From the NCBI GenBank assembly GCA_002104905.1, contig MCFE01000102.1, positions 107,614-171,613 on the forward strand: a stretch of 64,000 nt of DNA, given 5' to 3'. Under the pieces are notes generated by a model that saw nothing but the letters and a program-made list of their open reading frames with translations, was not told the DNA's origin and ran no database searches. A program made the position numbers and the translations under genes. This document shows positions 25,664 to 46,395 of the stretch, piece after piece (within the stretch, counting starts at the first letter, position 1; each line of letters begins with the position of its first letter). Source of the DNA: Basidiobolus meristosporus CBS 931.73. Lineage: Eukaryota > Fungi > Basidiobolomycota.

Positions 25664-25926
25664 GAATATTGGCCGCATGGTTATTCTCAACCGTCAAGAC
25701 GACATAGTCATCTAGAGTACGGAAAGACATAGAATATACGGCCCTCTCCGTCAACAGCCGAACTCCACCCGAAGGGCTTCGCTCAAGGCTGGCAGACGGC
25801 GAATCGCTCGATGATGTGCCGGATAGAAATCTACACCACTGATGGGCGAACTCTCGTGGAAGAGAGCTCTGTGTGCTTCGTAGTACCGATTGAAGGTAGG
25901 CAGATGCCTACAATCCACATCAACTG
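25664..25926 (-). ncRNA. snR30: snR30/U17-like H/ACA snoRNA copy 1 (AUA box)
   Basis: 3' hairpin ggccgt-ATATTCTA...AACCAT-gcggcca-ATA. TATAAAAG begins 33 nt upstream of the conserved 5' end. Confidence 0.78.
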
Positions 25927-25951
25927 AAGACATAGGAGAACTCTGTGGCTC

Positions 25952-25959
25952 CTTTTATA
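25952..25959 (-). promoter_or_regulatory. TATA box, flank type B (also upstream of copies 3, 5, 8, 9)
   Basis: TATAAAAG at a constant 33-nt offset from the module. Confidence 0.7.
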
Positions 25960-26405
25960 CAATCAGCTCCGAACTTTTTTTCAACCTTCAATGAACTCAA
26001 CAACAACAACAAACAATAACAGTCCAATAGCCATCCTAAATTTGGTCAGTGATCGATGTTGGTTAATTACTTACACTTTACGACTTGGAAAGCGCTTTCG
26101 GTTACCCAACGATGCTTATATATGAGCTAATTAAGCTTTGAGACCATAGTCTTTCACTCAGTTACCTAGATTCACCTGTCAATCTCTGATATTTGTCATC
26201 AATATTATATTGAAACATAGAGAGAATTCCACTCCCCAGGGATAAATCAAAGAGGTGTCGCTGAAAGGCAGGTTGTCTCAAAGAGGCTGTCATTCATGTT
26301 TATATATGAATAGATGAAGCTTTGATGCCACGAGCTTTCACGCGAATATTTCCATTCACTTGTCAATTCCCGTTATTTGTTTACAATATCATAATCTAGA
26401 TAGTA

Positions 26406-26668
26406 GAATATTGGCCGCATGGTTATTCTCAACCGTCAAGACGACATAGTCGTCTAGAATACGGAAAGACATAGAATATACGGCCCTCTCCATCAGCAGC
26501 CGAACTTCACCCGAAGGGCTTCGCTCAAGGCTGGCAGACGGTGAATCGCTCGATGATGTGCCGGATAGAAATCTACACCACTGATGGGCGAACTCTCGTG
26601 GAAGAGAGCTCTGTGTGCTTCGTAGTACCGATTGAAGGTAGGCAGATGCCTGCAATCCACATCAACTG
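26406..26668 (-). ncRNA. snR30: snR30/U17-like snoRNA copy 2 (AUA box)
   Basis: Same m1/m2/AUA arrangement. TATAAAAAG at 26701, in a different flank. Confidence 0.78.
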
Positions 26669-26692
26669 GTTGCAAAGAATCACACTGGCTCG

Positions 26693-26701
26693 CTTTTTAT
26701 A
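26693..26701 (-). promoter_or_regulatory. TATA box, flank type C (also upstream of copies 4, 6)
   Basis: TATAAAAAG at the same 33-nt offset, although the intervening sequence is unrelated to flank B. Confidence 0.7.
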
Positions 26702-26896
26702 CCAAAGATTTTTATGTACGCAACTTTGTCATTACCTTCCCCCCGTAAAAGGTTCATTGAGAAAAAAAGAAAAAAAGAGACTAAAATTGTTCAATGTATC
26801 ATTTTTACGTGATTCCACATTCTACAGTCGCTCATGTTAGATCATGTACTGATAAACACTATAAAAAGTTGTAGTTAAGTAAGAGTTCATGTTGGG

Positions 26897-26983
26897 ACTT
26901 ATTGGCTGCATGGTTGTTCTCAACATAGTCATCTAGAATACGGAAATATACAGTCATCTCTATCAACAGCCGCAATTACCCCC
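26897..26983 (-). pseudogene. Degenerate 3' fragment of the snR30-like module
   Basis: tattggctgcatggttgttctcaac..catagtcatctagaatacggaaa..tatac matches the module 3' end with two internal deletions, one of which removes most of m1. Confidence 0.65.
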
Positions 26984-27170
26984 TCCACAAATCTGAAAAT
27001 GTAACACTGGAACACTATGAATGGTGGTAACTGTTGAAAAACCAGGTACAAGAATAGTACCAATCGCTGATAGATAATTTACGCCTGATCGAGTACTGTT
27101 TATTTCAACTAAACCATGTTCAACCACCATTAATGCTTCGTGGACACACGGGCCAGATAACAAGCAACAA

Positions 27171-27569
27171 TCAGCGCTTACATGTAGCTTTCATTCCCTT
27201 ACCAGGCCAACTCTTGCGTTTGGAGTATTTGGGGTCGATCCGGTAAGGAAAGCGGCTCCTAGATGCATGGGGCCATACTTCGTTTCCATTCCTCTTGAGT
27301 TCAGCAAGCACTTTCTCGATCCTCTCTGAATCTCTATCAATCACATAACAGCCAGCATCGGCTGGGCAACCATGTGCAGTCTCAACCAAAAAGATAATGC
27401 TCCCATGAGAGCAGATAGCATTACGACTACCACGTTTAATGATCAAGCCCGGATAATTCTCAGGAGTAAAATCTTCGTTTTCTTGTGGGGCGAAATCACT
27501 CGAGGCAGTCACTGTATCTTTCAACAGAAAGGTGAACAAAGCCACGAGGAAAACGGAAAAGTGATGCAT
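27171..27569 (-). CDS. Small secreted 4-Cys protein, family member S1 (132 aa)
   Basis: Hydrophobic N-terminus. Motifs FTPENYPGLII, AIC.HG, GCY, NGN.VWP and WPGKG..ATC are shared with four paralogues. Confidence 0.85.
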   Translation of the reverse strand: MHHFSVFLVALFTFLLKDTVTASSDFAPQENEDFTPENYPGLIIKRGSRNAICSHGSIIFLVETAHGCPADAGCYVIDRDSERIEKVLAELKRNGNEVWPHASRSRFPYRIDPKYSKRKSWPGKGMKATCKR

Positions 27570-28184
27570 GACACCTGGCTGCCTGATGGTGATCTAGAGC
27601 TTGGGGTGGTTTTATCCTGAACTGGTCCCAGCGTTTCATCGTGCTCACACATGGGGTATCAGCTAGATATCAACTAATCTGAAATGCCAGTGACGTTCCG
27701 CAGGTTTCAAGCGACAATATGACGCATAATCTAGATGATTCAATTCTCTACTCGCCGACTGCAGCGCCTCTTTGTTAGAATGATCACCAGCTTACGTCCT
27801 GTGTAGTTGGGTACTGGTGATATGGTAGTGCTCAACTGTCAAGATACTGTGGTCATCCACCCTGATTTCGCAATGAGAAGGGAATTCAGTACTTTGCTAT
27901 GCTGACTAATCGATGCAGGTATGGTTGGGTTACCCACTACTAAGCAGTCCTAAACCCACTCAGTAGTCAAGTTGAAATTGTGCTTGGAATTGCCACATTG
28001 TTCACTACTAAGATGAGGGTTCCCCAACAACCAAGCTTGCCTATGTAGGAGTGTCCCTCGGCTGATGATGCACTTACCCGAGAAATTGACCCAAGACCCA
28101 TACATTAGAAACGAGTTGGATGGTTTTCGTGGATGTGCTTGCATTTTTGTAGCGTTGTCGAATGATACATTTGTGAGTGTAGGG

Positions 28185-28447
28185 TGTTGTAGACCGCATG
28201 GTTATTCTCAACCGTCAAGACAACATAGTCATCTAGAATACGGAAAGACATAGAATATACGGCCCTCTCCGTCAGCAGCCGAACTCCACCCGAAGGGCTT
28301 CGCTCAAGGCTGGCAGATGGCGAATCGCTCGATGATGTGCCGGATAGAAATCTACACCACTGATGGGCGAACTCTCGTGGAAGAGAGCTCTGTGTGCTTC
28401 GTAGTACCGATTGAAAGTAGGCAGATGCCTACGATCCACATCAACTG
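28185..28447 (-). ncRNA. snR30: snR30/U17-like snoRNA copy 3 (ACA box)
   Basis: ATATTCTA...AACCAT-gcggtct-ACA. TATA at 28480. Confidence 0.82.
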
Positions 28448-28934
28448 AAGACATAGGAGAACTCTGTGACTCCTTTTATACAATCAGCTCCGAACTTTTT
28501 TTCAACCTTCAATGAACTCAATAACAACAACAATAACAATAACAATAACAGTCCAATAGCCATCCTAAATTTGGTCAGTGATCTATGTTGGTTAATTACT
28601 TACACTCCACGACTTGGAAAGCACTTTCGGTTACCCAACGATGCTTATATATGAGCTAATTAAGCTTTGAGACCATAGTCTTTCACTCAGTTACCTAGAT
28701 TCACCTGTCAATCTCTGATATTTGTCATCAATATTATATTGAAACATAGAGAGAATTCCACTCCCCAGGGATAAATCAAAGAGGTGTTGCTGAAAGGCAG
28801 GTTGTCTCAAAGAGGCTGTCATTCATGTTTATATATGAATAGATGAAGCTTTGATGCCACGAGCTTTCACGCGAATATTTCCATTCACTTGCCAATTCCT
28901 GTTATTTGTTTCCAATATCATAATCTAGATAGTA

Positions 28935-29197
28935 GAATATTGGCCGCATGGTTATTCTCAACCGTCAAGACGACATAGTCGTCTAGAATACGGAAAGACA
29001 TAGAATATACGGCCCTCTCCATCAGCAGCCGAACTCCACCCGAAGGGCTTCGCTCAAGGCTGGCAGACGGTGAATCGCTCGATGATGTGCCGGATAGAAA
29101 TCTACACCACTGATGGGCGAACTCTCGTGGAAGAGAGCTCTGTGTGCTTCGTAGTACCGATTGAAAGTAGGCAGATGCCTGCAATCCACATCAACTG
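28935..29197 (-). ncRNA. snR30: snR30/U17-like snoRNA copy 4 (AUA box)
   Basis: Same motifs. TATA at 29230. Confidence 0.78.
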
Positions 29198-29500
29198 GTT
29201 GCAAAGAATCACACTGGCTCACTTTTTATACCAAAGATTTTGGCCCCCACCCCTGTATTATGTACCGTGATTAAACCTGGAAAATCAGCGTTTCGTTCAC
29301 AACGAGACTGTGCAACCATTAAAACTACATATCCGATAAAAAGGATTAGAAGTGCTATGGTGCACTGGTTGGCACAGGCCAGCATGAAAAATACGCTTGA
29401 TTGAGAACTGTTTATTTCAACACCACTATAAGCCAACAAGTGTGACATTTGAACCACCATTCAGGTTTGATGGATGCACGGGCCAGATAACAAGCAACAA

Positions 29501-29901
29501 TCAGTGCTTACATGTAGCTCTCTTTCCTTTACCAGGCCAGCTCTTGCGTTTGGAGTACTTAGGATCGATCCGGTAAGGAAATTCACTTCCAGATGCAAGG
29601 GGCCACACTTTGTTTCCATTCCTCTTGAGCTCAGCAAGCGCTTTTTTCGATCCTCTCAGAATCTTTATCAATCGCATAGCAACCAACATCAGCTGGGCAA
29701 TTAATTACTGTATCTACCAAAAAGACGATGTCCCCATGAGAGCAGATAGCATTGCGACCATCTACTTGGATGATCAAGCCCGGATAATTCTCAGGAGTGA
29801 AAATCATCGTTTTCTTGTGGGGCGAAATCGCTCGAGGCAGTCACTGTATCTTTCAACAGAAAGGTGAACAAAGTCACGATGAAAATGGAAAAGTGATGCA
29901 T
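29501..29901 (-). pseudogene. Secreted family member S2, with two +1 frameshifts in homopolymer runs
   Basis: Colinear with S1 but 2 nt longer. The extra bases lie near 29800 and 29645. This is either a real pseudogene or a sequencing error. Confidence 0.7.
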
Positions 29902-30494
29902 GACACCTGGCTGCCTGATGGTGATCTAGAGCTTGCGGTGGTTTTATCCTGAACTGGTCCTAGCGTTTCATCATGCTTACACATAGAGTATCAGCTCGAC
30001 ATTTGCATAATCTGGATGATTTAATTCTCTATTCAATATGACCAACTTGCTGACTACAGCGCCTCTTTGTTAGAGTGATCACCAACTCACACCTTGTTCA
30101 ATTGGATACTGGTGATCTAATAGTGCTCAACTGTCCAGATACTGGGATCATCTATCTTACTTTTACAATAAGGAGGGAATCCAATGCCTAGCTATGTTGC
30201 TGATTGATGGTGGTATAGGTAATACTAGCTACATGAACATGCACACTACTAAACGGTCTTGAACCCACTCAATACTCGAGCTGAAACGGTGCTAGGAAAT
30301 GTCACACTGCTTAATACTGAGTTGAGGATTCCCCCAACAACCAAACTTGTCTATGTAGGAGTACCCCTCGGCTGATGATGCGCTTACTCGAGAAATTGAC
30401 CCAAGACCCATACATTAGAAACGAGTTGGATGGTTTTCGTGGATGTACTTGCATTTTTGTAGCGTTATCAAATGATATACTAGTGAGTGTACGG

Positions 30495-30757
30495 GGTTGT
30501 AGACCGCATGGTTATTCTCAACCGTCAAGACAACATAGTCGTCTACAGTACGGAAAGACATAGAATATACGGCCCTCTCCATCAACAGCCGAACTCCGCC
30601 TGAAGGGCTTCGCTCAAGGCTGGCAGATGGCGAATCGCTCGATGATGTGCCGGATAGAAATCTACACCACTGATGGGCGAACTCTCGTGGAAGAGAGCTC
30701 TGTGTGCTTCGTAGTACCGATTGAAGGTAGGCAGATGCCTACAATCCACATCAACTG
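30495..30757 (-). ncRNA. snR30: snR30/U17-like snoRNA copy 5 (ACA box)
   Basis: Same motifs. TATA at 30790. Confidence 0.82.
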
Positions 30758-31089
30758 AGGACAAAGGAGAACTCTGTGGCTCCTTTTATACAATCAGCTC
30801 CAAACTTTTTTTCAACCTTGAATGAACTCAACAACAACAACAATAACAGTCTAATAGCCACCCTGGATTTGGTTAGTGATCCCACACTATAACTAGTGCT
30901 ATCTATGAAGAGAGTCTCACACTCCCCAGCGATAAATCAAAGAGGTATTGCTGAAAGGTTGTCTCAAAGAGACTTTCTTTCATATTTATATATGAATAAA
31001 CGAAGCTCTGAAACTATAAGCTTACACCAATTTTGTCTATTCACTTGTCAATTCCCGTTATTTGTTTTCAATAAAATATTTAAGTATTA

Positions 31090-31352
31090 GAATATTGGCC
31101 GCATGGTTATTCTCAACCGTCAAGACGACATAGTCGTCTAGAGTACGGAAAGACATAGAATATACGGCCCTCTCCATCAGCAGCCGAACTCCACCCGAAG
31201 GGCTTCGCTCAAGGCTGGCAGACGGTGAATCGCTCGATGATGTGCCGGATAGAAATCTACACCACTGATGGGCGAACTCTCGTGGAAGAGAGCTCTGTGT
31301 GCTTCGTAGTACCGATTGAAAGTAGGCGGATGCCTGCAATCCACATCAACTG
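31090..31352 (-). ncRNA. snR30: snR30/U17-like snoRNA copy 6 (AUA box)
   Basis: Same motifs. TATA at 31385. Confidence 0.78.
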
Positions 31353-31685
31353 GTTGCAAAGAATCACACTGGCTCACTTTTTATACCAAAGATTTTTGTC
31401 CCTACCCCTGTATTATGTGCCGTGTTTAAGCATGAAAAATTAGCAATTCGTTTTGAGTAATACCACATGCAAAACATCATGGTAACTAGCAACCGTTGAA
31501 AATACAGAGTCACGTATCCCGTGAATTGATTTCAAAGTACTATCGTGCAATGATTAGCATAGATCGACATGGAAGATATGCTTTATTGAGCACTATTTAT
31601 TTCAACACTACCATACTCTAACATGTACAACATTGGAACTACCATTATGGTTTCAAGGACGCATGGATCCGATAATGAGCAACAA

Positions 31686-32081
31686 TCAGTGCTTACATGT
31701 AGCTCTCTTTCCTTTACCAGGCCAACTTTTGCGTTTGGAGTACTTGGGGTTGATTCGGTAAGGAAAGCCTTTCCCAGGTGCGTAGGGCCACACTTTGTTC
31801 CCATTCCTCTTGAGCTCAGCAAGTACTTTTTGGATCTTTTTCGAATCTTTATCAATCGCATAACAGCCAATATCCGTTGGACAATCGTGTACCGTCTCAA
31901 CCAAAAAGATGATATCCCCATGGAAACAGATGGCATTATGACCACTAGTTTCAATGATCAAGCCCGGATAATTTTCAGGAGTGAAAGCATGCTCTTGCTG
32001 ATGGATAACGCTATGGCTACCAAGAGCGATTCCAACGCACGAGGTGTACAGAGTTGCAAGGAAAATAGAGAACTCACGCAT
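31686..32081 (-). CDS. Small secreted protein S3 (131 aa)
   Basis: Signal-peptide-like N-terminus. About 74% identical to S1 over the mature region (manual count 73/99). Confidence 0.85.
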   Translation of the reverse strand: MREFSIFLATLYTSCVGIALGSHSVIHQQEHAFTPENYPGLIIETSGHNAICFHGDIIFLVETVHDCPTDIGCYAIDKDSKKIQKVLAELKRNGNKVWPYAPGKGFPYRINPKYSKRKSWPGKGKRATCKH

Positions 32082-32723
32082 GACACTTGCTCATTGACAA
32101 AGTCTTCCTGGCACTCAACCTACATTTATTAGGAAGTGACCGCATAGTTTCACATTACTCAAACATAAGGTCTCAGTTGAGCATCAATCAATCTACAATG
32201 CCGGTGATCTCCCTCAGGTTTCGAGCTTTCATATGAGATGACAGCTTTGCAAATCCAAATGATTTTAGATTCTCTAATCAGTGTGACCAACTCGCAGACT
32301 ACAGCGCCTCTTTGTTAGAATGATCACCTACTCGCATCTTATGTAGTTAAATACGGATGACATAGTAGTTCTTAACTGTCAAGGTACTGTGGTCATCCAC
32401 CTTGATTTCGCAACGAGAAGGGAATTCAGTACTTTGCTATGCTGCTAATCGATGCAGGTATGGTTGGGTTACCCACTACTAAGCAGTCCTAAACCCACTC
32501 AGTAGTCAAGTTGAAATTGTGCTTGGAATTGCCACATTGTTTACTACTAAGATGAGGGTTCCCCAACAACCAAGCTTGCCTATGTAGGAGTGTCCCTCGG
32601 CTGATGATGCACTTACCCGAGAAATTGACCCAAGACCCATACATTAGAAACGAGTTGGATGGTTTTCGTGGATGTGCTTGCATTTTTGTAGCGTTGTCGA
32701 ATGATACATTAGTGAGTGTAGGG

Positions 32724-32986
32724 TGTTGTAGACCGCATGGTTATTCTCAACCGTCAAGACGACATAGTCATCTAGAATACGGAAAGACATAGAATATACG
32801 GCCCTCTCCATCAACAGCCGAACTCCACCCGAAGGGCTTCGCTCAAGGCTGGCAGATGGCGAATCGCTCGATGATGTGCCGGATAGAAATCTACACCACT
32901 GATGGGCGAACTCTCGTGGAAGAGAGCTCTGTGTGCTTCGTAGTACCGATTGAAAGTAGGCAGATGCCTACGATCCACATCAAATG
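32724..32986 (-). ncRNA. snR30: snR30/U17-like snoRNA copy 7 (ACA box)
   Basis: Same motifs. Its unique upstream flank still has TATATAAAG 32-34 nt away. Confidence 0.82.
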
Positions 32987-33011
32987 ATTCAGAAACTCTC
33001 TCTACCACCTG

Positions 33012-33020
33012 CTTTATATA
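33012..33020 (-). promoter_or_regulatory. TATA box in a third, unique flank
   Basis: TATATAAAG at the same offset as in flanks B and C. Confidence 0.65.
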
Positions 33021-34059
33021 TGGGATTCATTGTACAAATTCGGAAAAAAACAACAATATCAGCAATGACAATAATATTGATCACCAATTAGATTCTCCTA
33101 CCCACATAATGTACGCTGAAAAAAAGCCGCAAGCATCGTTGCTATTCACCCGCTCAAGTCACATTTGAAATAGGCACCGTACCTCATTAATTCCATCACC
33201 ATCACATTGGTATCCATTACGTTTCCCTTTACCAGAACAATTCTTAGGTGGGGAAAATCATTCCAGCATGTGGCCATACGGCCAATATCCGTCAAATTGA
33301 TGGTATCTCGGTAGCAAAAAGTAGCATGGTTTTCTTCACTTTCGGAATTCAGGTCTGGGCGGTCTTCAGCAGCGAACGGATTCACACACAACGAATGTTA
33401 CACTGCTCCCAGCAAGTGAGATGAAGAGCAGTCGGAGTGGCTTAGAATTTCTATAACTTGAGATACCGGCAGTCTATCCGACTCTGGTCTGATCTTTTGA
33501 TTGCACCAGCAGTGTGATATGGATCGAGTATCCTAGAATTCATCTCAGGACAATGTTGAGATATCAGACGCCATTGATAACTCGATACAATCTACCCCAC
33601 ATCTCCCTTGTTGTCGGCGAACTAGAAAAAGAACGATCGACGGGACTAGAAGTCACAAGAGTAATCACAATCAACTTCAAAAACTCGTAGGTGGTTGGAT
33701 CGCTAGTAATTATTGAAGATTGCTGTAGTATGTAGGTTTGGGAGTATTCGGGTATTTACGGAATTATGGCAGAGTCAACAAGCGTGAAGCGGATCTCTTC
33801 TAGTTCTGGAGTGGGAGTGGGGTTCGCCAAGAGAACAATAGATTTATTCGGGCTTTTTGTGGCAGCTTTGTCTCCATAACCAGAATCTTTGGATGTATTG
33901 TAAACCCAAAGTCATCTATGGCCAAATAGGGCATTGATCGGTTAGCGTACCGCATGAAGGTTAACGAGAGCTAGTCAAGTTACGATATGAAGCAGTAACG
34001 ATAGGGATCCTTTATTTCTTATCCAGACTGATATAGGCACTACCCCCTCAACTGACCCT

Positions 34060-36040
34060 TTATTGGATCTTCATCAGATTTGGTACATTCACCACGTATC
34101 CTATCGTTCCGCTGTGATCCTCCTTTTCGATGTTCAAGGTGAATTGCCAGCCGTTTGCGTCGGTAGGATCGATGGAGCACCAATTACGTCGGTTCAAGAT
34201 TTTCTTGAGCATTCTTGATTTCCCGTTGACGTCTTGAGAGAAAAGCTCGATCATCTGTTCTTCCGTGTTCTCGTCAAATTTGTAGGTGGATGAGGAGACA
34301 TGCAGAACGCGCACAACCATATCCGGAGGAGGCCCGTTGACGATCGCCGATGAGATGATTTGCACCATGTAGCGATGATCACGCCCTGGGTCAATGGTCT
34401 GACCTCTAGTGGCAAAGTAGCCGGCTCCGCCTGCATGGACATCCCCGGCCAAAAACGTTACACGAACGTTCTTACTTTGGGCAACCTGCTGCAGGCGTTG
34501 AACGAATATTTGCCGTTCTAGCATGTGAGGCTCGGCGGTCCAATGGTCGGTCAAGTCATCCAGAAGCTCAGGCTCACCAAAGGCGTTCATGACCTGCGGG
34601 AAGGCGCCGGTTTTTTGGAAAAGTGACGAGGCAGAGATTCCTTGTAAGGTGCTTTCGGCGATACTCAGGCGGGGGTAAACAATAGGAACTCCAAAGCCAA
34701 CAATGAGATGTTGGCAGCTAGAGGGGATCTGCGTATTCAAAACATCAAAGATCATATCCCAGGTTTCACGAGAGATGATCTGATGTTTCAATCTCTCAGA
34801 GCGGGTATCAAGTGCAAGCAGACACGTGGTTGGGCCAAGATGCTTGAACATCTGGTAACTGCGATTTCCGAAGTATCCGTGCTTGAATGCAAGTTCTCGG
34901 GTGGTGTGTTGCTGGAACAAGAGGAAATAGTCTATAGCGGTCTTTCCAATGCCTGAAGTAAACCGATTTAGCCGAAGCAGCTTCATCGTAGAGCTACATC
35001 GAAAACGTACCTTGGATAACGGGAGAATTCTGCAAGGAATCGGGATAAGAACCATATCCGTCAAAGATATCATGATCGTCCACAATATAGATGGTAGGAA
35101 TGCAGGCTTGGGCTTCTTTGAAGACGCCGGTATCGAAATTGAGGCAATAATTGTTGAAGTAGAAGCGCTCTACTTCACTAGCCATTGAGCTAGTCCACGG
35201 TGCCTTGTCTCTAGCCGAGCGGTTGGAAATACTTAGCCATCCCACGATCTCGCTGATGGAAGGAAAGACTGCATCACAATAAAGTTGGTCACCGCCACCA
35301 ATCATAGCGTGGTAGGGCTTGCTATTGTGTTGGGCCATCAAATCTCTCCACAGCGGGTCCTTGCCTCCAAACTGCGCCTGGGGATCCTTGATGTCTGCAG
35401 AGAACCCATTACAACTCCAGAATGACATGCGCCATTGCTGGTGGAAGGCGGGGACTGCGAATTTGTAGCTTACTTTGTTCTCAATAGAATAGTTCACCAT
35501 CTTCTCCTGTTGGCCCATCCTCACACGGATATCAAAACGCCAAAAGATATGCGAACCATAGGTATAGAGTCTCTCGCCAGGAATTTGGAAATTGTTTGGG
35601 CCATCTCGAAGATTAAGTGTTGGTGTGCGAAGCCCATTATCGTTCAGAGTGATATACAAGACACTGCCGTACCATACCTGAGAATTCAGATCTACTTCGT
35701 AGAAACGGAGGAATGGCCCAACGTGATCGCCAGGTGGAGCAGGCGGAAAGCCTTCCTTATCACTCTGAGAATCGCCTTCACCTTGACCGGGAATATGGGG
35801 AGTTATTGGTGGTTGAACGGGTATATTGGAGTATCCTTGTCCAAGCTCAGTGTAGCCTCCATAGTTGGGGTTGCCGTTTGAGAATGAGTCCGGAAGAGGG
35901 AACGAATTCCCGGGATGATTGTTGTAGTGACTACCAGAATTCTGAACAGGGTATGGTGGGTGGTTGTTGCCGGTTCCATAATCAGGATACTCATTGGGAT
36001 CTGGCATCCCAAAGCCGGAATGGGAGTTGTAGTGGGACAT
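34060..36040 (-). CDS. PhoD-like metallophosphatase
   Basis: FWSCNGFS, HAMIGGGDQLYCD, VDDHDIFDGYGSY, LDTRSER, DDLTDHW, FLAGDVH and QIISSAIVN. One intron near 34953-35010. Confidence 0.88.
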
Positions 36041-36405
36041 GTGGGGCTACCGGAAGCTGGCGTGAGCAAGGCTGACCGAGAATTTCGCCAAAATAGTTTT
36101 TCACGTCTAGCATAATACCCGGTCATTGTCCCCAAGCATCATTGGCTAATGCGGAATTTGTTTCCCACTAACACAGACCACAAATGCCAAGATCGATGTT
36201 CTCTCCAAAATTCAGGTAACCAACCTGAATCATTGATTTGGAGGAATATCTTAAATTGTGTGACGCCATTCAATCGGCCAGATATCCGATTACTCCATAC
36301 TAAGTTAAGCATCGGATTCAAAGTTAATGAATGTTGATTACAATTGAGGCTTTTCTAACCTAAATTTCTGACGACACATATTGCCTACTAACAACGTCTG
36401 CCAAG

Positions 36406-39400
36406 ATGACCGAAACGAGCACACGGTTTCCGGAACATCCCGCCAAATTGGACTTGTTGGAATTGCAGAGCCTAACAAATCTAGATGACATTCAAGAGGC
36501 CTTAAGACTATTGGATTCCGAAGAAAGTCTAGTAGATTCGGAATTGGACCAGATTCTGGCGTCGAAATCGGAGGTGTACGAGGCGTTGGAAGGCTTGGAT
36601 GTGATCAGGTAATTCGAGCCAGGATAATGCTACAATCACTCTATCCCTAACTCCTCTGGGAATACGCCAATCCTCTAGACCAAAATTAGTGAAGCTCACA
36701 AAACAAACTGAAGACATGGTTGACAATGTCATTAAGACATCATACACTGCAGAGAACATCAGCTACAAAGTTCGCCAACTCGACTTCGAACAGGTCAAGA
36801 GCGGTGGAATTTGCCTCTTCTACTTCCTTACTAAATGCAATATATAGTACGCAGTGAAGGAAGCCATCAAGAAAATAGGCGATACTCAAGAGCTGAAAGT
36901 AACCGTAGGGAGATTTCAAATCCTCTCGGGAGGTTGCTAAATGGTTTTCTCAATTTTCTAGGAATGTATAAGTGGGCTCCACGCAGCCATTGAAACAAAA
37001 GACTACGAGAGCGGAGCTGCATTGATCCGTCGTTATCTCTCGCTAGATCCTCTGATATTCGATGAAGGTTTTGCATACTTTGCCGTAGTGAGTAGCCTTC
37101 CGAATTGCGTATACCCCATTTATCGTTCTCACTAAACTTCAGTCTATCCAAGTCGTCCGAGGAATACGCAGAGAATCCAAGAGAGCTGCTTGAGAACGCC
37201 CGAAATAAGCTCGTCTCCATGGTTGTTGAAGAATTTGAAGCCGCCGTACGCGCAGACAACCAGAAAGATATCGGGCGTTATTTCAAATTGTTCCCAGTGA
37301 TGGGCAAGGAGGAGCAAGGCTTGGATGAATATTCACAATACGTGTGTGGAATCATTTCTAAGCAAGCGCAAGAAAATCTAGCGAAGCCAGGTAACCCGCA
37401 TGAATATCTTTGTCTGGCATTCACATGGTAACCATGGCGATTTCAGTCACCACCGCCACTTTCTTCCCCGATATTCTCATGAACCTTTTTGAGACCATTG
37501 CCATCATTATCGATCAACACACGCCAGTCATTGAGGCACACTACGGCCCAGGTCAAAGTGCTGAGAGTAATCCAAAGATTAGAGCAGGAAGGAATCACTC
37601 GAGGAAGAAGAATCATCGACTCCTTCCGTGAGGAGCGCCAGATATCGCGCAGGGTACGTTCTAAACAACACTGAGAAACCACGGTGTTCAACTTGTAAAC
37701 GGTACAATTTAGATAGCAGAGATCAACTCGTATATCAGCGCCAGTAAAAAGCCACCGAACCCCAACAAAGCCACCGATGTGATACCGGAGCCCAAAACTT
37801 TGGACGTGTTGCTTAACGAGCTCGTGATGATTTGCCAGAGAGTGCATCTTTATCATCGCTTCATGCATTCCAGAGCACAGGTAGGAAGAGGCAGGATCAT
37901 CGAATCTCTTTGTCAACACTAACAAGCTGTGCAGAGTGAAATCAGCATTTTGAGAGCGAAGCATCAAGCGGAGGAGATATTGATTTCGGAGAATATTGAA
38001 GCCTATGATGAGGATGGTCTCTTACTCAACAGTGAACTGAACAAGCTGGTACAAGAGTTGACCGATGATTGCATCACAATGGAGAGCTTCTACTTGAGAC
38101 GGTCCGTTGAAAGAGTAGGTTTTTCGCAGCGCCCACTTTCCATGAATCACCGAAACTTAGAGACGTCATTTAGGCCATCAAGATGGATGAATACGAGAAC
38201 GGCAACCTTACTTCAAGCTCGGTTGATGATGTGTTTTATTTGTTGAAGAAATGCTGCAACCGCACAATTTCCATTTATAATGTCGAGTGCCTCAAGGCTA
38301 TGATCGGGGTGATCAACGACGTGTTGGAAAACAACTATATTGGAGTGTTCCAGAAGAGACTCTCGGGTGGCATCAGCACTGAGGCTCGTGATGAGAATAT
38401 CATTTACATGGTAATTGACGAATGCCGCCTTCCTCACAACAATATGACTAATGGCCTTCCCTAGGTATTGCTGAATGACGTGGACGTTAGTTGCGACTAT
38501 TTGCAGAAGCTTCTGGAGGAAGTCCAAAACGAAGCACTCAAGATAATGTCCGCATTAAAGGATGGCGAGAAGATTACTGTTCAAACTTGTTTAGCTTCGT
38601 TGAACGATCCTGGGGCTCAACTAAAGCAGATTTTACAGGTGCATCTTTTCTTTTGCCTGGTGCATTGGTATCTCCGATTAACCTATGGCAACGTTTATTG
38701 CTCCTAGACAAGCCTAACACAGCTAGCCAACCAACGTGCCAAGCCTAGAGTTCGACCGATATTGCAAGAATCGTACAAGGACGTCAAATATTTGTTAGGT
38801 GAGGAAGAATATGTTGCCTCGGAGAGTGATCAGACCTTTACCAAGAGATTTACTGGCAACTTCGACCGATTCATTGGGATGTTCAAGGTATTTGCCATAT
38901 GCACTAGTACTGCGCTTCCCCTCTCGCTAACGCATTCTTAGCAATACCTCACGGAGAACAACTATAGGCAGCTAATGGCTCATCTGGTCGAGGCATTTGC
39001 ATCTGATTGGGAGCGGATGATAGTTCAATTTAAGTTTACCCAGGTAATAGCTTTAATAGTTGGCCTTATTAGGACATGCACTTATCAAGTCCTCAATGAC
39101 TAGCTGGGCGCACTTCGCTTAGACAAAGACATTCGCACCTTGACCACGTACTTCTCTACAATCTCGGGGCTGACGGTTCGGGACAAATTTACCAGAATCA
39201 ATCAGATCGCTGTGCTACTCAACTTGGACCAGGTCTACGACATCTATGATTATTGGGGAGACAGAGCCTGCCCAGCAACATGGCGGCTCACACAGTCAGA
39301 AGTTCGGAAGATCCTTGGGTTAAGGTTTGTTGATAACTTGCATAATCATGCATGACTTCAGTGACTGACGTTGAGATTCAATAGAACGGATTTCCGCCAC

Positions 39401-39427
39401 GATGACATTGCCAAACTTAAATTCTAG
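36406..39427 (+). CDS. COG4: Conserved oligomeric Golgi complex subunit 4
   Basis: IGRYFKLFPVMGKEEQGLDEYSQYV, MESFYLRRSVE, SSVDDVFYLLKKC and LGALRLDKDIR...RDKFTRINQIAVLLNL...WRLTQSEVRKILGLR. Confidence 0.92.
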
Positions 39428-39659
39428 AAAGTCCAACTGCGCTCCAGTAGGGTACCTCCGAATCCATCGATCCTCCAGTAGGGTAATTTCAAATTCCTTA
39501 AATAAAGAATATTGGCATTGGAGTCGCTCTGGATAGCCAATGAGTGTTGTGATTCAATGGGGTTCGCTCTAAGCACAACGCCCTGTTTCATCCGTCAGTC
39601 ACGTTAATTCAAGAATAAATGGAGCCGAAGCGACGAGGTCAGCTTCAAACCACTTTCCA

Positions 39660-40058
39660 ATGCATTTCTTGATCCCAACTCTCGTGTGTGTGGCTGTCTT
39701 GTCATCAGTAAGCGGCCTTCCGAGCTCCCCGAAGGAAAATCCCTTCACACCGGAGAACTACCCGGGGCTCATCATCAAGGAATACGGAACAACTGCCATC
39801 TGCTATCACGGAGATATTGTCGTCCTGGCGAAAACATCCAGTGAATGCCTGGCCGATGTTGGATGTTACACGCTTGACAGGGACAGAAAACAGATCAAAT
39901 CGGTTCTAGACGATCTCCAAAAGAACGGCAATGAGGTCTGGCCAATGTCACCATGGGGTTCTGACTTTCCCCATCGGGTAGATCCAAAGGGTACTGACCT
40001 CAAGGACTGGCCAGGCAAGGGTGAGCAAGCGACATGTACACATGATCCGAGTGTGTGA
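39660..40058 (+). CDS. Small secreted protein S4 (132 aa)
   Basis: Signal peptide MHFLIPTLVCVAVLSSVSG, with the same family motifs as S1 and S3. Confidence 0.85.
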   Translation: MHFLIPTLVCVAVLSSVSGLPSSPKENPFTPENYPGLIIKEYGTTAICYHGDIVVLAKTSSECLADVGCYTLDRDRKQIKSVLDDLQKNGNEVWPMSPWGSDFPHRVDPKGTDLKDWPGKGEQATCTHDPSV

Positions 40059-40159
40059 CTCGAGAATAAAAAGTTGTTGATTTTGTTGCATGATCTAGTG
40101 TATGTGGTAGTTGGATGGTGTGGGCCAGTGCGCATTGACCAGGCATTCTTAGATCTCTT

Positions 40160-40385
40160 CATCCAGTTTAGAATAACTATCCTAGCTTGTCCATTCAACC
40201 GCCTTGACTAGCATGGGCATGAAGATCATATGTTCTCTGTAGAGCAAGCGCATACACTTAAAACGGCCAGGCCTACAGTACGTAAGAAAGGGCATTCTTC
40301 GTCCCAAGTATTTGGTTCATCGAGTTGGTCAACGGATATATCCCGAACCCCAGTATTGAGTAACCCTTTTGCTCATCCTAGGCCA
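40160..40385 (-). pseudogene. Degenerate copy of the 3' end of the downstream membrane-protein gene
   Basis: Aligns with 41400-41640 (e.g. ttcttcgtccc.agtatt.ggttcatcgagtt.gtcaa..gatatatcccgaa.cccagtattg). Confidence 0.7.
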
Positions 40386-40429
40386 TGTCACAGTGATGGT
40401 CACACATACTTACCACAACCACAATATCT

Positions 40430-40720
40430 AGTTGGGTGCGCTTCACTCAGACAGACATCCGCACCTTGACCACATGCTTCTCTACAATCTCGGGGCTGAC
40501 GGCTCGAGACAATTTTACCAGAATCAATCAGATCGCTGTTCTACTCAACCTGGGCTAGGTTGACAACATCCATGGTTACTGGGGAGACAGAACCTACCCA
40601 GTAACATGGCGACTGACTCAGAAGTCCGAAAGATCCTTGGATATATGTACAATCATGCGTGATTTCGGTGACTGACGTCGGGAAACAATAGAACGGATTT
40701 CCGCCACGATGACATGCTCT
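40430..40720 (+). pseudogene. Degenerate duplicate of the COG4 3' exons
   Basis: Aligns with 39105-39410 and carries an in-frame TAG and indels. Confidence 0.8.
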
Positions 40721-40878
40721 CCAGTAAGGGAATTCCAAATCAAAATTAAACGCTGCCAATGGGTGATGTGGTTCAATGCGGCTCACTTCACAAACAGCGC
40801 CTTGTTTCATCCGTCAGCCGTGTTAATTCAAGAATAAATTGAGGCGAAGCGACGAGGTCAGCTTCAAACCACTTTCCA

Positions 40879-41280
40879 ATGCATTTCTTGATCCCAACCC
40901 TCGTGTATGCGGCTGTCTTGTCATCAGTAAGCGGCCTTCCGAGCTCCCCGAAGGAAAATCCCTTCACACCGGAGAACTACCCGGAGCTCATCATCAAAGT
41001 TACTGATGGTATAACTGCCATCTGCTATCACGGAGATATTGTCGTCCTGGCGAAAACATCCGGTGAATGCCTGGCCGATGTTGGATGTTACACGCTTGAC
41101 AGGGACAGAAAACAAATTAAATCGGTTCTAGACGATCTCCAAAAGAACGGCAATGAGGTCTGGCCAATGTCACCATGGAGTCCCGGCTTCTCCTATCGGG
41201 TGGACCCAAAGAATACTGACCTCAAGGACTGGCCAGGCAAGGGTGAGCAAGCGACATGTACACATGATCCGAGTGTATGA
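40879..41280 (+). CDS. Small secreted protein S5 (133 aa)
   Basis: Near-identical tandem paralogue of S4 (offset 1219 bp). Confidence 0.85.
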   Translation: MHFLIPTLVYAAVLSSVSGLPSSPKENPFTPENYPELIIKVTDGITAICYHGDIVVLAKTSGECLADVGCYTLDRDRKQIKSVLDDLQKNGNEVWPMSPWSPGFSYRVDPKNTDLKDWPGKGEQATCTHDPSV

Positions 41281-41370
41281 CTCGAGAATAAAAAGCTGTT
41301 GATTTTATTGAATGATCTGGTATATGTGGTAGTTGGATGGTGTGGGCCAGTGTGCATTGGCCAGGCAGTT

Positions 41371-43180
41371 TTAAATCTCTTCATCCAGTTTAGAATAGTT
41401 TTCCTGACTCAGCCCTTCAATTGCTTTGGCTTGCATTGGCACAGGGTTTGCTAGAGCATCTTTATGTGTAGATAGCATGTTTTCTTTGTAGAGCAAGTGA
41501 AACATGATGATGGCGCTTACGCTTAAGACGGCCGGGTCTACAGTAGTGAGGATCACATACGAAAGGGGGTTCTTCGTCCCGAGTATTCGGTTCATCGAGT
41601 TAGTCAATAGATATATCCCGAAGCCCAGTATTGCGTAACTCCCCTCCAAAACCACCTACAAATGCCCACCTTAGCTTCATCCTCAGCCTGCGGCTGTGCT
41701 AGAAAACACATACCTCACGCACTCTATCATCGAATGACCCGCATCCTCCTAATCGTGCAAGGAAGTTCCTCGCTTAACAGATTTAATAAGGCCTCCCATT
41801 CGTCATACTGCATCCCATCACCTACCTTGATAGAAACTTAACAACCGGGATATCAGCAGTGTGGTGGATATACCGTGTAAGATAAACAACTGAATATATC
41901 CAACAAGCATTTCATTCTCAAGCAACTCTGCCCCTGTAAGTAGGATACAACTTACGGCCAGACATGAAAGCTCAAATCTCAACGTAAACCCCAAGACCTT
42001 GAAATCCTCATTGGCTAGGTGGCTGGTGATGATTCGCTTCCTGTGTAGTACAGAAGTTAGTCCGGAAAGTCGCTAACTTAAGTTGCGTTATGCCTCCTCA
42101 CCAAGATAGTAACATTAGGGAATTCCCGGCATACCCAAGGATTAATGATATCATTACAATCGACTGATATACGCCTGGATAGCTACGAATAGGTGGAAGC
42201 ACAGCAGATACTGCATCTTGACGTTAGTGTCGACTAGCAATGGTACAGGATGCAAGAGGTCAAACCTAAGAGAAAGGTGCACATGAAAAGACATGCTATC
42301 ACTTTAGTATCGGCACGAGCCCCTTCCCGACGAAATAGTGTGCCCAGTTGTATGAACCCGTAAAAGCCAGACGCTATTTTCTGATGGCACAGTCACGCGT
42401 TATTCAAACTTCAATACCATAAAGGCGTCTTCATGCTTACCATGCCAGCAGAAAACCAAAATTGCGCGATATACAATAGTGATTTGTGTAATTGATTCCA
42501 AACCCCGGGTTCTGAATGAAGAGGTGTTTAGCCTTATGAAAGGGAGGGCCCTGAGAAGATATGCTATGCGAACCTTCCACCACTTGCACGAGGAATGGCT
42601 CGGGTGTGGTTGCTCTGCTTCGCAACTCCACACCCTGCTCCTTGGTAGTTAGAGCCAATTTGATCTCGGTCGGCAAGAGTTTTAATTTACCAAACTCTGT
42701 GAACGGAGTGCTGATTTGTGTTTCGTCGTTCTCTTTGCTCGTGAAAACGACTAGACGAAGAGGGGGTAATTTTGACATAGTAACAAGCTCATCTAAAACA
42801 TCCAGTTGCCTGATCACCTAGGCAATACAGTCAGGTAAGCTCAGTGAACTGACAATTTCTGGTATACCTCATACCTGGCTGAAATATTGGCAGCCAAACT
42901 CCTCTACTTGGGGAAATAGTAGTATGGTACTAAATGTGTTGATTGATAATGTTGTAGGGATCCTGTATGCATCAATGGTAGACTGAGCAAAATTACAGTC
43001 CGTTGCAGTTGGCTTGGGAGCATTTAGTAGCACTCCGGTGATGTTGTAGAAAGGTGTAAGATAGCCATAGAAGCTCTGGGTTGTATAGGATTTTGTAGGG
43101 ACGTCCAAAGGAAGCAGATGCCCCCAAGTCAACGTTATGTAAGCAAGAAATACCACCGTTAGCAATACCCTGGCGAACAT
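41371..43180 (-). CDS. Signal-peptide, multi-pass membrane protein of unknown function
   Basis: N-terminal MFARVLLTVVFLAYITLTWG, an extracellular region ending EPGVWNQL, and several hydrophobic exons. GT-AG introns. Confidence 0.65.
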
Positions 43181-43695
43181 AATAGATTCGATTCTTTAAA
43201 AAGCAGAGAGTAGAAGCCAAGAACCAAACAAATAAGGCCTGGATTTGTCTTTACTTTGGATCGATTCAGTCGTCCAAAAGGGAAAAATCACCAAACCAAG
43301 ATGAAAAGGTGATTCTGTTCTTCCAAAATATAAACTTTCAAGTACTGCATGATGCAGGTGACTCTCGAAGAGTATAGCCTGCTCCCCGCACACTGATTAT
43401 TATTTTTCTCCACAACTGGTGTACACCATAAACAATTCGCACGAGCTCAGCATGGTATTTAGACAATAGATTATGCTTGGTCGCATTTGAATAACAATCC
43501 AAGAAAATTGAAACGCAACCAGGGGCAAGTCACAAACTCCCCACTGCACCAATTTTTTCGCATGATTTGTATCCACATTCTAACCAATTTTCTCGATAAT
43601 TCTCATTCGAGCCTCTCGATAATTCTTACTCGATGCAAACTTTGCTGAAATTCCTTGTATCAACCGCCTCTGGTGGATGGGAATAATCGCCAACA

Positions 43696-44587
43696 ATGTC
43701 GAAAGTTAAGGCATACAGAGTTTCCAACTTTCATCGGGCCCCTCCGACGCCCAAAGGGAAATCCCGGCTACCCTTGGTGGTAGGCGGTCTAGCCGTCTAC
43801 CTGGGTGTTACCTATTTATCCTTCAGCTACTTCAAACTATCCAAGCCTGAAGAAGAGAAAGATGGAATACCAACCCAGAAGGATACTTGCACTTCATTCA
43901 ACTCCACCTACGACCACATAGCGGAAAATTACGACAAGAAAATTGGTATGGACGAAACTCTTATGGGCTTGGGCTTATTAAGACGCTGGCTCATAAAGAA
44001 TGCTAAAGTATTGTACCTTGTTGCTCGAAGCATTTTGGCTCCTGGTACTAATCAAGTTTCCTCTATAGGGGGATGTTTTAGAGGTGTCAGCGGGTACAGG
44101 GCGTAATCTTCCATACTATCGTGAGCAACGGTACGACAACTTGACTCTTACCGATCAGAGTGGACCAATGCTGGACCAGGCAAAAAAGAAAATGAAGGAA
44201 TACTCGGAAAGAGTTGGTGGCACTGAAAAGGTTCACTTTGAGGTCATGAACGTAGAGCAAGCCAAATATCCGGATAACTCCTTTGATACGGTGATCTCTA
44301 CCTTCAGTGTATGCAGTTACGATAATCCTGTTAAAGCACTTAGTGAGATGCAGCGAGTATGTAAACCTGATGGTTACGTCTTACTACTGGAACACGGTCA
44401 GAGCAAGTACAAGTGGCTGAATAACATCTTGGACACTCAAGCCGAAAAGCATGCTTTACAATGGGGATGCTGGTGGAATCGGGATATTATGGGTTTGGTT
44501 TACAAAGCTGGGTTGCAGGTGGTTTATCAATCTAGATGGCATCTCGGCACCACATACTATATTATTGCTAGACCTGCTCCCAACTAG
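43696..44587 (+). CDS. OMS1: Mitochondrial SAM methyltransferase, Oms1-like
   Basis: N-terminal TM segment, YDKKIGMDETLMGLGLLRRWL, VLEVSAGTGRNLPYY and LLEHGQS...WGCWWNRDI. Confidence 0.85.
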
Positions 44588-44900
44588 CTTGCGTATTCCA
44601 TTCAGCAGCATTACACTAACACAAAGAGTCGAATAAATCAAAAGTAATTAGATAATCGACTTATAGCTTCCTTTCTACACGCCCTTTCTATCAATTAAAC
44701 TGCTTTCAAGGCTTGGCGGGCCAATAGCTTGACCATTGATACAGTTATATTACACATAAGAAGTTCATTCTTTACTACCAAAGTGAAAATTATCTTGCCA
44801 AACTTTTCCGTATTACAATATATCCCAGGCTTTTTACGGTCTTCGTGGATGTGCTTGCATTTTTGTAGCGTTATCAAATGATATACTAGTGAGTGTACGG

Positions 44901-45163
44901 GTTTGTAGACCGCATGGTTATTCTCAACCGTCAAGACAACATAGTCGTCTACAGTACGGAAAGACATAGAATATACGGCCCTCTCCGTCAACAGCCGAAC
45001 TCCACCCGAAGGGCTTCGCTCAAGGCTGCCAGATGGCGAATCGCTCGATGATGTGCCGGATAGAAATCTACACCACTGATGGGCGAACTCTCGTGGAAGA
45101 GAGCTCTGTGTGCTTCGTAGTACCGATTGAAAGTAGGCAGATGCCTACAATCCACATCAACTG
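44901..45163 (-). ncRNA. snR30: snR30/U17-like snoRNA copy 8 (ACA box)
   Basis: Same motifs. TATA at 45196. Flanks match those of copy 5. Confidence 0.8.
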
Positions 45164-45498
45164 AGGACAAAGGAGAACTCTGTGACTCCTTTTATACAAT
45201 CAGCTCCAAACTTTTTTTCAACCTTGAATGAACTCAACAACAACAACAACAATAACAGTCTAATAGCCACCCTGGATTTGGTTAGTGATCCCACACTATA
45301 ACTAGTGCTATCGATGAAGAGAGTCTCACACTCCCCAGCGATAAATCAAAGAGGTATTGCTGAAAGGTTGTCTCAAAGAGACTTTCTTTCATATTTATAT
45401 ATGAATAAACGAAGCTCTGAAACTATAAGCTTACACCAATTTTGTCTATTCACTTGTCAATTCCCGTTATTTGATTTCAATAAAATATTCAAGTATTA

Positions 45499-45761
45499 GA
45501 ATATTGGCCGCATGGTTATTCTCAACCGTCAAGACGACATAGTCGTCTAGAGTACGGAAAGACATAGAATATACGGCCCTCTCCATCAACAGCCGAACTC
45601 CACCTGAAGGGCTTCGCTCAAGGCTGGCAGACGGTGAATCGCTCGATGATGTGCCGGATAGAAATCTACACCACTGATGGGCGAACTCTCGTGGAAGAGA
45701 GCTCTGTGTGCTTCGTAGTACCGATTGAAAGTAGGCAGATGCCTACAATCCACATCAACTG
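45499..45761 (-). ncRNA. snR30: snR30/U17-like snoRNA copy 9 (AUA box)
   Basis: Same motifs. TATA at 45794. Confidence 0.78.
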
Positions 45762-46395
45762 AGGACAAAGGAGAACTCTGTGGCTCCTTTTATACAATCA
45801 GCTCTAAACTTTTTTTCAACCTTGAATGAACTCAACAACAACAATAGCAGTCTAGTAGCCACCCAAAATTTGGATAATGTGCTAGACTGAGTTACACCAA
45901 CTATCAAAGCAGGCATTGATATTATGGAAATGTGTCTAAAGAAATGATAAATTGATTACCTACCAATTGAGCGCCAATCTTCCTTTATCATGGGTAGGAA
46001 GAAAAGTACCCTAGCATCAAATGATGACTCGGTATGACCACGTGATTCACTCAACTCTTAAAGTCACCATCAAGCTGAACAATATCATAGTTGCTCTCTT
46101 TTACATCGTTTTTTTCAATTGGAAATGATTGCGCTCGCTGGCGGATTGCGATTTGAGTGATTCGCATGAGAACATAGTGATGTCGTGCAGATACATATAA
46201 AATACGATAAATGGCTTAATTTAGTGGAAATATAATTTCGATATCGATTATATTATTAATTGGTGATCCTAGTGAAAAAAAAGCATTCCACTATGGGTGA
46301 CTACCTCTGTATACGCAATTTCTTTCCTTTCTTTTTTTCCCTTTAGTATCGCTTACTGAGATATTCACCAACACAGTACTCTCCCTCCTTCGGTT

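Follow-up and report, generated by a model that had tools for sequence, protein, structure and literature searches.

A nine-copy family of probable snR30/U17 snoRNA genes, each behind its own TATA box, in the fungus Basidiobolus meristosporus

The snR30 RNA of yeast, a small nucleolar RNA (snoRNA) of the box H/ACA class on which production of 18S rRNA depends, pairs through its m1 and m2 motifs with the rm1 and rm2 elements of expansion segment 6 (ES6), forms a three-way junction with an immature rRNA helix and, together with Utp23, Krr1 and Kri1, chaperones the platform subdomain before release (PMC2664660, PMC7601244, PMC12095548). Both motifs are listed as nearly invariant, and AAACCAU is given as m2 for every species in that list (PMC7601244, Table 1), while the 7-nt spacing from m1/m2 to the ACA box is invariant and functionally important (Fayet-Lebaron et al., PMC2664660). 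The snR30 of T. brucei is the one reported case of an m1 off consensus, in which a compensatory change in the 18S rm1 keeps the pairing (PMC2664660). The RNA measures 606 nt in S. cerevisiae and, as U17, 325 nt in S. pombe. Paralogues of fungal snoRNAs are known in some species (PMC5824354). Described separately, the A. fumigatus RNA Afu-309 is intergenic and gave a 318-nt cDNA and, on Northern blots, a band of 320 nt; other Aspergilli conserve it, and its discoverers gave it no annotation (PMC2377427). The subject of this report is a 64,000-nt stretch of the Basidiobolus meristosporus CBS 931.73 genome (GCA_002104905.1, contig MCFE01000102.1, positions 107,614 to 171,613 of the forward strand; hereafter the window), in which a 263-nt module occurs nine times. 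These nine modules are probably functional, independently transcribed genes of this fungus's snR30/U17 box H/ACA snoRNA.

A direct-repeat search, which found a family of nine members within 24-47 kb, and alignment of the minus strand placed all nine modules on that strand, spanning 25664-45761, and thus reproduced exactly the copy number, length and outermost coordinates given in an earlier, sequence-only reading of this DNA. The strings quoted there (GGCCGT, ATATTCTA, the upper stem, AACCAT and the ends GCGGTCT-ACA and GCGGCCA-ATA) were likewise all found. With each copy taken to start at the first conserved base and to stop 3 nt after ACA/AUA, identity among the nine bodies is 95.7-99.2% in the variant table. 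The conserved block is sharply bounded, beginning with CAG/CAT-TTGATGTGG and ending a few bases past either GCGGTCT-ACA (c3, c5, c7 and c8) or GCGGCCA-ATA (c1, c2, c4, c6 and c9). A composite pattern comprised of the m1-like 8-mer, 40-60 nt, UAACCAUGCGG and an ACA/AUA tail was found nine times against 0.00 expected from 100 shuffles, and a profile search (nhmmer) with a model of the module returned no intact copy beyond these nine in the window. The copies are given below with their upstream flank type, their tail and their scores against two Rfam models, Afu_309 and SNORA73.

25664-25926, minus strand: snR30-like gene c1; flank type 1, AUA tail; Afu_309 26.6 bits, E 3e-4; SNORA73 18.0 bits; nhmmer E 6e-104
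26406-26668, minus strand: snR30-like gene c2; flank type 2, AUA tail; Afu_309 28.4 bits, E 8.6e-5
28185-28447, minus strand: snR30-like gene c3; flank type 1, ACA tail; Afu_309 19.6 bits; SNORA73 17.4 bits
28935-29197, minus strand: snR30-like gene c4; flank type 2, AUA tail; Afu_309 28.3 bits, E 9.7e-5
30495-30757, minus strand: snR30-like gene c5; flank type 1, ACA tail; Afu_309 20.4 bits; SNORA73 18.4 bits, aligned through ACA
31090-31352, minus strand: snR30-like gene c6; flank type 2, AUA tail; Afu_309 27.9 bits, E 1.3e-4
32724-32986, minus strand: snR30-like gene c7; flank type 3, ACA tail; Afu_309 24.0 bits; SNORA73 18.3 bits
44901-45163, minus strand: snR30-like gene c8; flank type 1, ACA tail; Afu_309 19.5 bits; SNORA73 17.7 bits
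45499-45761, minus strand: snR30-like gene c9; flank type 1, AUA tail; Afu_309 27.9 bits, E 5.5e-6; SNORA73 18.7 bits; mosaic

When short stretches were searched against the 4227 Rfam families at relaxed E-value thresholds, RF01512 (Afu_309) and RF00045 (SNORA73/U17) were the sole families with E below 1, and each matched all nine copies. Afu_309 matches over its full length (model 1-322) with 19.5-28.4 bits, at E-values that range from 5.5e-6 to 0.04 with the copy and the length of sequence searched; the SNORA73 matches are weaker, at 17.4-18.7 bits. In three of the four displayed Afu_309 alignments, and in the SNORA73 matches of c5 and c9, the m1 and m2 motifs, the 7-nt spacer and ACA lie in register, and the snR30/U17 identity proposed in the sequence-only reading is upheld to that extent by two snR30-type models, both below threshold. 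The SNORA73 alignment spans the lower stem, m1, the pocket, the base of the upper stem, m2 and the lower stem again, to which an ACA copy adds the 7-nt spacer and ACA itself; aligned over its full length, this model collapses the 5′ domain and gives no position for an H box. In the last hairpin of the Afu_309 consensus itself, AUAUUCC stands on the 5′ side and AAACCAUG on the 3′ side, with ACA coming next. Because this consensus carries m1, m2, the lower stem and ACA, RF01512 is read here as the snR30 of filamentous fungi (Aspergillus; Pezizomycotina). This family, typed in Rfam only as 'sRNA', thus appears from its consensus to be the Aspergillus snR30 orthologue, and its merger into the snR30/U17 clan might be worth considering.

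The likeness to Afu-309/RF01512, the best Rfam match, extends over the closing helix of the 5′ domain, a conserved AUUUC, an internal hairpin whose core reads GCCUUGA...CCC..GGUG, and the 3′ hairpin with m1, m2 and a GCCA-ACA tail. Both RNAs are intergenic and stand alone, and both are compact, with 263 nt here against about 320 nt in Afu-309. The 5′ domain is shorter than in the Afu_309 model, 20-22 nt replacing a 65-67-nt insert, and part of the internal hairpin is missing; m1 is without one C, m2 starts with U, and nine copies stand against the one genomic location listed for A. fumigatus (PMC2377427). The modules resemble yeast snR30 in their order of 5′ hairpin, candidate H box, internal hairpin, 3′ hairpin and ACA or AUA, and in having the m1-like and m2-like motifs at the base of the 3′ pocket, one on each strand, at a distance of 7 nt from the tail box, and would, judging from their promoters, likewise be independent RNA polymerase II genes (PMC7601244, PMC2664660). 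They differ in number from the single independent gene of budding yeast (PMC7601244), in length from S. cerevisiae snR30 (263 against 606 nt), in m1 (AUAUUCUA(U) in place of AUAUUCCUA) and m2 (UAACCAU in place of AAACCAU), and in the AUA of five copies. The 3′ hairpin of vertebrate U17/SNORA73 (RF00045) aligns from m1 through ACA and the RNA is of similar size (about 205-220 nt). Vertebrates too have multiple copies, human U17HG holding two and Xenopus RPS8 carrying one in every one of its six introns (PMC7601244), but those are intronic and processed from a host transcript, whereas each copy here has a TATA promoter of its own. T. brucei provides a precedent for the drift of a motif, although its m2 is unchanged, whereas both motifs are changed here by one position each.

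The layout of the 3′ hairpin is that of snR30, namely a lower stem, an m1-like AUAUUCUA, an m2-like UAACCAU, a 7-nt spacer and ACA or AUA. Directly after the lower stem, all nine copies bear AUAUUCUAU, which has the right position and is one base short of the m1 AUAUUCCUA; when aligned to the SNORA73 covariance model, the sequence has a 1-nt deletion that falls in the m1 CC, in agreement with the earlier description of an m1 variant lacking one C. UAACCAU occupies the place of m2 in every copy and matches AAACCAU at six of seven bases, a deviation that the sequence-only reading had not recorded, nor had it recorded the three decayed partial copies described below. RNA position 250 is the last of m2 and 258 the first of ACA, which leaves the 7-nt spacer (GCGGUCU or GCGGCCA) required of snR30. 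Either ACA or AUA, the latter an accepted variant of the ACA box (PMC6984369), stands at the aligned tail position, and conservation stops about 3 nt later. Against the canonical rm1 GGAAUA, the m1-like UAUUCU would form five Watson-Crick pairs and one G-U pair, and AACCA would form five Watson-Crick pairs with UGGUU of the canonical rm2 UGGUUU, which was deduced from PMC2664660.

Whether folded singly or as a consensus, the module is predicted to form a multi-branched 5′ domain that a 7-bp helix closes, followed by a short hinge, an internal hairpin, the 3′ hairpin and a free tail, and the hairpin-hinge-hairpin-tail architecture with its internal hairpin is present in both the minimum free energy and the consensus folds. 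The 3′ hairpin is built on a 6-bp lower stem of GGCCGU with GCGGUC or GCGGCC and an upper stem of 4 + 7 bp, the lower stem being extended into the pocket by RNAalifold. Only 2.4 kcal/mol is lost when m1, m2 and the tail (ACA) are held single-stranded, substitutions in the stems of the consensus fold mostly keep pairing by way of G-U wobble, and the fold z-score is only -2.6. The hinge proper reads GAGCGA, which resembles the U17 consensus AGAGCA and not ANANNA. A separate observation concerns the tails of the AUA-type copies (25664-25680 in c1 and the equivalents in c2, c4, c6 and c9), where GGCC-A-ATATTCTA after the lower stem repeats the GGCC-GT-ATATTCTA of the 5′ strand. The predicted mature 3′ end of these five copies would thus carry a second AUAUUC, and the duplicate 8-mer may be the trace of a rearrangement via the near-palindromic stem.

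Every one of the nine copies has a TATAAA that begins 32-33 nt ahead of its first conserved base, and this holds across three otherwise unrelated types of upstream flank. That the genes are transcribed independently, as first claimed from the sequence, gains indirect support from this fixed offset. In the type-2 copies (c2, c4 and c6), an island of identity starts about 12 nt upstream of the TATA box and stops shortly beyond the RNA. The boxes are as follows, those of c2 to c9 being calculated from the TATA offsets.

25952-25959, minus strand: TATA box of c1 (TATAAAAG); its start lies 33 nt ahead of the first conserved base
26694-26701, minus strand: TATA box of c2
28473-28480, minus strand: TATA box of c3
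29223-29230, minus strand: TATA box of c4
30783-30790, minus strand: TATA box of c5
31378-31385, minus strand: TATA box of c6
33013-33020, minus strand: TATA box of c7
45189-45196, minus strand: TATA box of c8
45787-45794, minus strand: TATA box of c9

Each gene would accordingly be driven by a minimal RNA polymerase II promoter whose TATA box lies some 30 nt ahead of where conservation begins, and would give a predicted RNA of about 263 nt comprised of the multi-branched 5′ domain, hinge, internal hairpin and 3′ hairpin, ending 3 nt after ACA/AUA. By homology with yeast, this RNA would assemble with Cbf5, Nop10, Nhp2 and Gar1, and the basal strands of its 3′ pocket, the m1-like UAUUCU and the m2-like AACCA, would pair with rm1 and rm2 in ES6 of the pre-18S rRNA. 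Such pairing would hold the ES6 region immature during folding of the platform subdomain and allow the A0/A1/A2 cleavages.

On the minus strand the order of the array is c7, a small secreted-protein gene, c6, c5, a degenerate protein gene, c4, c3, a protein gene, c2 and c1. Each tandem unit is about 2.3 kb long and has two snR30 genes, and c9 and c8 form a dispersed pair at 44.9-45.8 kb. Tandem duplication of this unit (two snR30 genes plus a small secreted-protein gene), together with the one dispersed pair, gave rise to the family. Alignment of the three full repeat units gives identities of 93-100% for the modules, about 70-93% for the neighbouring protein gene and 3-55% for the spacers. 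All 20 variable sites of the bodies lie outside m1, m2, the pocket strands and alignment columns 37-130. The four-gamete test is failed by 35 of the 66 informative site pairs, and c9 is a mosaic, with a 3′ half and downstream flank like those of c6 (repeat family D6, 99%) and a 5′ side like that of c5/c8. Both features indicate that the copies exchange sequence, and the four-gamete failures point to gene conversion. Decayed partial copies also lie within the array.

26898-26976, minus strand: decayed partial copy; nhmmer E 8.8e-13, model 167-266; 3′ hairpin only, with the rest of m1 and one upper-stem strand deleted
27822-27860, minus strand: possible older, strongly decayed 3′-hairpin remnant; nhmmer E 0.06, not significant alone
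32360-32415, minus strand: possible older, strongly decayed 3′-hairpin remnant; nhmmer E 0.4

The sequence at 27822-27860 parallels the fragment at 32360, which has the equal position in another repeat unit. These decayed fragments show the fate of unconstrained copies. Given spacers that can no longer be aligned, the decayed fragments and a relative that conserves only the modules, the nine copies are read as maintained. Purifying selection and gene conversion would keep them alike, and copies that escape both would decay quickly.

Contigs from two DNA runs of the same organism bear on the reality of the copies, with the proviso that summed contig depth does not equal copy number. Word depth is about 180-260 over unique spacers and about 380 over a twice-present spacer (30811-31114, family D6), while bins that contain a module reach several-fold higher values. 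Distinct contigs run through the 3′ ends of modules and on into different flanks, among them one that leads from the 3′ end of c1 into its unique flank. This evidence supports distinct copies, and an array created by misassembly, a concern of the sequence-only reading, finds no favour in contig depth or in the crossing contigs. In a relative sampled by a further run (X4; 85-95% alike, about 10% diverged), only the modules and the flank downstream of c1 align. A 19.6-kb contig of that run ends inside the c1 orthologue at a depth of 25.8, and pieces of the module have depths of 27-114 (1-4.4 times), so that the module family looks conserved and multi-copy in the relative. A pattern scan of metagenome contigs for m1...m2 relatives returned 23 loci, all of them without the lower stem and ACA; these were rejected as snR30 relatives and read as chance, many resembling bacterial ribosome-binding site-ATG contexts.

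Several findings weigh against the identification as snR30. At gathering thresholds no Rfam family matches anywhere in the window, and for this reason the identification rests on sub-threshold matches, of which the best reach 28.4 against 48 bits for Afu_309 and 18.7 against 74 bits for SNORA73, the latter being far below gathering throughout (about 18 bits). An Rfam search had been the test put forward in the sequence-only reading, and it gives matches at the relaxed thresholds and none at the gathering thresholds. The gathering score is a curation threshold set for other lineages and no biological feature. Both m1 and m2 differ from a near-invariant canon, and each helix would lose one distal Watson-Crick pair relative to canonical rm1/rm2, unless the 18S rRNA compensates. 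Compensatory pairs number zero among the nine copies, which are too alike for covariation. The ACATCA earlier proposed as the internal H box is indeed invariant in all nine copies (RNA positions 110-115), but this ACAUCA, the only perfect ANANNA, belongs to the 3′ strand of the helix predicted to close the 5′ domain and does not lie in the hinge, and freeing it costs 2.8-3.7 kcal/mol. The DNA runs, finally, may be the assembly's own source.

The departures in m1 and m2 lend themselves to other interpretations. They could reflect co-evolution with an altered ES6, or a shifted register on a GGAAUA/AGAAUA near-repeat, the array then being a lineage-specific snR30 variant, perhaps beside canonical copies elsewhere; this we consider rather doubtful. 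Co-evolution with ES6, if true, would be the second documented case after T. brucei, and one touching m2 as well. The near-repeat is seen just after rm1 in the widely used fungal 18S primer sequence CATGGAATAATRRAATAGGA, and if RR is AG there it would be perfectly complementary to UAUUCUAU, which would form eight Watson-Crick pairs with AUAGAAUA. A shifted register is thus conceivable, and is judged less likely because of the geometry of the junction, in that it would shorten the rRNA connecting helix of the yeast three-way junction (PMC12095548). The same AGAAUA-type near-repeat, allowed by the primer sequence, is a possible target should the modules be a diverged paralogue family, that is, an snR30-derived H/ACA RNA whose changed m1 and m2 address another register or target alongside a canonical snR30 elsewhere. 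Both motifs are indeed off canon in all nine copies and invariant among them, yet the 7-nt spacing, the pocket geometry and the sequence flanking the pocket still match U17 and Afu_309, and the changes cost one terminal pair per helix with the G-U wobble of m1 still possible. We regard such a paralogue family as unlikely. It is also improbable that the nine are mere passengers, young duplicates riding on amplification of the secreted-protein cluster, mostly silent or redundant and decaying, with the essential snR30 gene elsewhere. Their setting in a tandemly duplicating, repeat-rich region with decayed fragments would suit such an origin, as would AUA in place of ACA in five of nine copies and the non-canonical m1 and m2 of all. 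The flanks, however, have diverged beyond alignment while the RNA and TATA box remain 96-100% identical, and such a contrast demands that selection or conversion be focused on the gene. The module is moreover conserved and multi-copy in the relative that is about 10% diverged, with c1 at the same position, and m1, m2 and the pocket are free of variable sites.

Two further readings set the snoRNA gene itself aside. A short, RNA-like module with sharp boundaries and many copies, in a window that also holds retroelements nearby, could be a mobile or retroposed snoRNA-derived element, either a snoRNA retrogene or akin to a short interspersed nuclear element (SINE). The copies have no poly(A) tail and no A-rich 3′ flanks, their TATA boxes lie in the flanks outside the conserved RNA, and they share all or part of larger duplicated flanks in one orientation, as in segmental duplication; a snoRNA-derived retroposon or SINE was rejected on these grounds as very improbable. 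Least credible of all, to the point of near-exclusion, is a small protein-coding gene behind the repeated open frames of 88-93 aa. One sense frame is open across the module, but it has no ATG start, the listed open reading frames (ORFs) begin with TTG and lie over three copies only (c2, c4 and c6), no Pfam match was found at E up to 0.1, and conservation stops at RNA-type boundaries. The coding reading was accordingly rejected for its TTG starts and lack of a Pfam match, and the view of the sequence-only reading that these ORFs are spurious holds.

Taken as snR30/U17 genes, the modules would be new in representing a strongly amplified member of a known RNA family with fixed deviations in both of its motifs and with coexisting ACA and AUA tails. 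At least nine maintained and individually promoted copies would mean that an snR30 gene can be amplified and homogenised like ribosomal DNA or the vertebrate snoRNA families, and the fixed one-base changes in m1 and m2 would serve as a natural test of the variation permitted in the snR30-ES6 helices. The snR30-like genes of this array escape Rfam at its default thresholds and might end up in annotations as spurious ORFs.

Interleaved with the snR30 genes is a family of proteins of about 132 aa, diverging much faster than they do. Its members have a hydrophobic N-terminal leader and a conserved FTPENYPGLII...C.HG.I...C..D.GCY core, and the three members scanned (those at 27171, 31686 and 39660) gave no Pfam match at E up to 0.1.

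27171-27569, minus strand: member of the ~132-aa protein family
about 29450-29900: degenerate copy of the ~132-aa family
31686-32081, minus strand: member of the ~132-aa protein family
39660-40058, plus strand: member of the ~132-aa protein family
40879-41280, plus strand: member of the ~132-aa protein family

A further, separate tandem duplication, which repeats about every 1.22 kb, occupies 39127-41307 (repeat families D8, D9 and D11; 87-94% identical) and carries two secreted-protein paralogues on the plus strand. Elsewhere in the window, a PhoD-related phosphatase on the minus strand (34060-36040) is split into overlapping ORFs at 34060-35085 and 34994-36040 by an intron or a frameshift, and a single minus-strand ORF at 51233-52837 fuses an ATP-grasp (D-Ala-D-Ala-ligase-like) domain to a class I methyltransferase domain. 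The window also holds a Zn2Cys6-type 'Fungal_trans' transcription-factor domain, a PTR2 transporter and a cyclin. Mucoromycota form the best look-alike cluster of the PTR2 protein, a weak pointer to that group, and the look-alikes of the cyclin were uninformative. Its right end is repeat-rich, and pieces of Copia-type retrotransposons are found at 54845-57742 (plus strand) and 62105-63412 (minus strand), with gag, integrase and, on the opposite strand, an RVT_2 reverse transcriptase.

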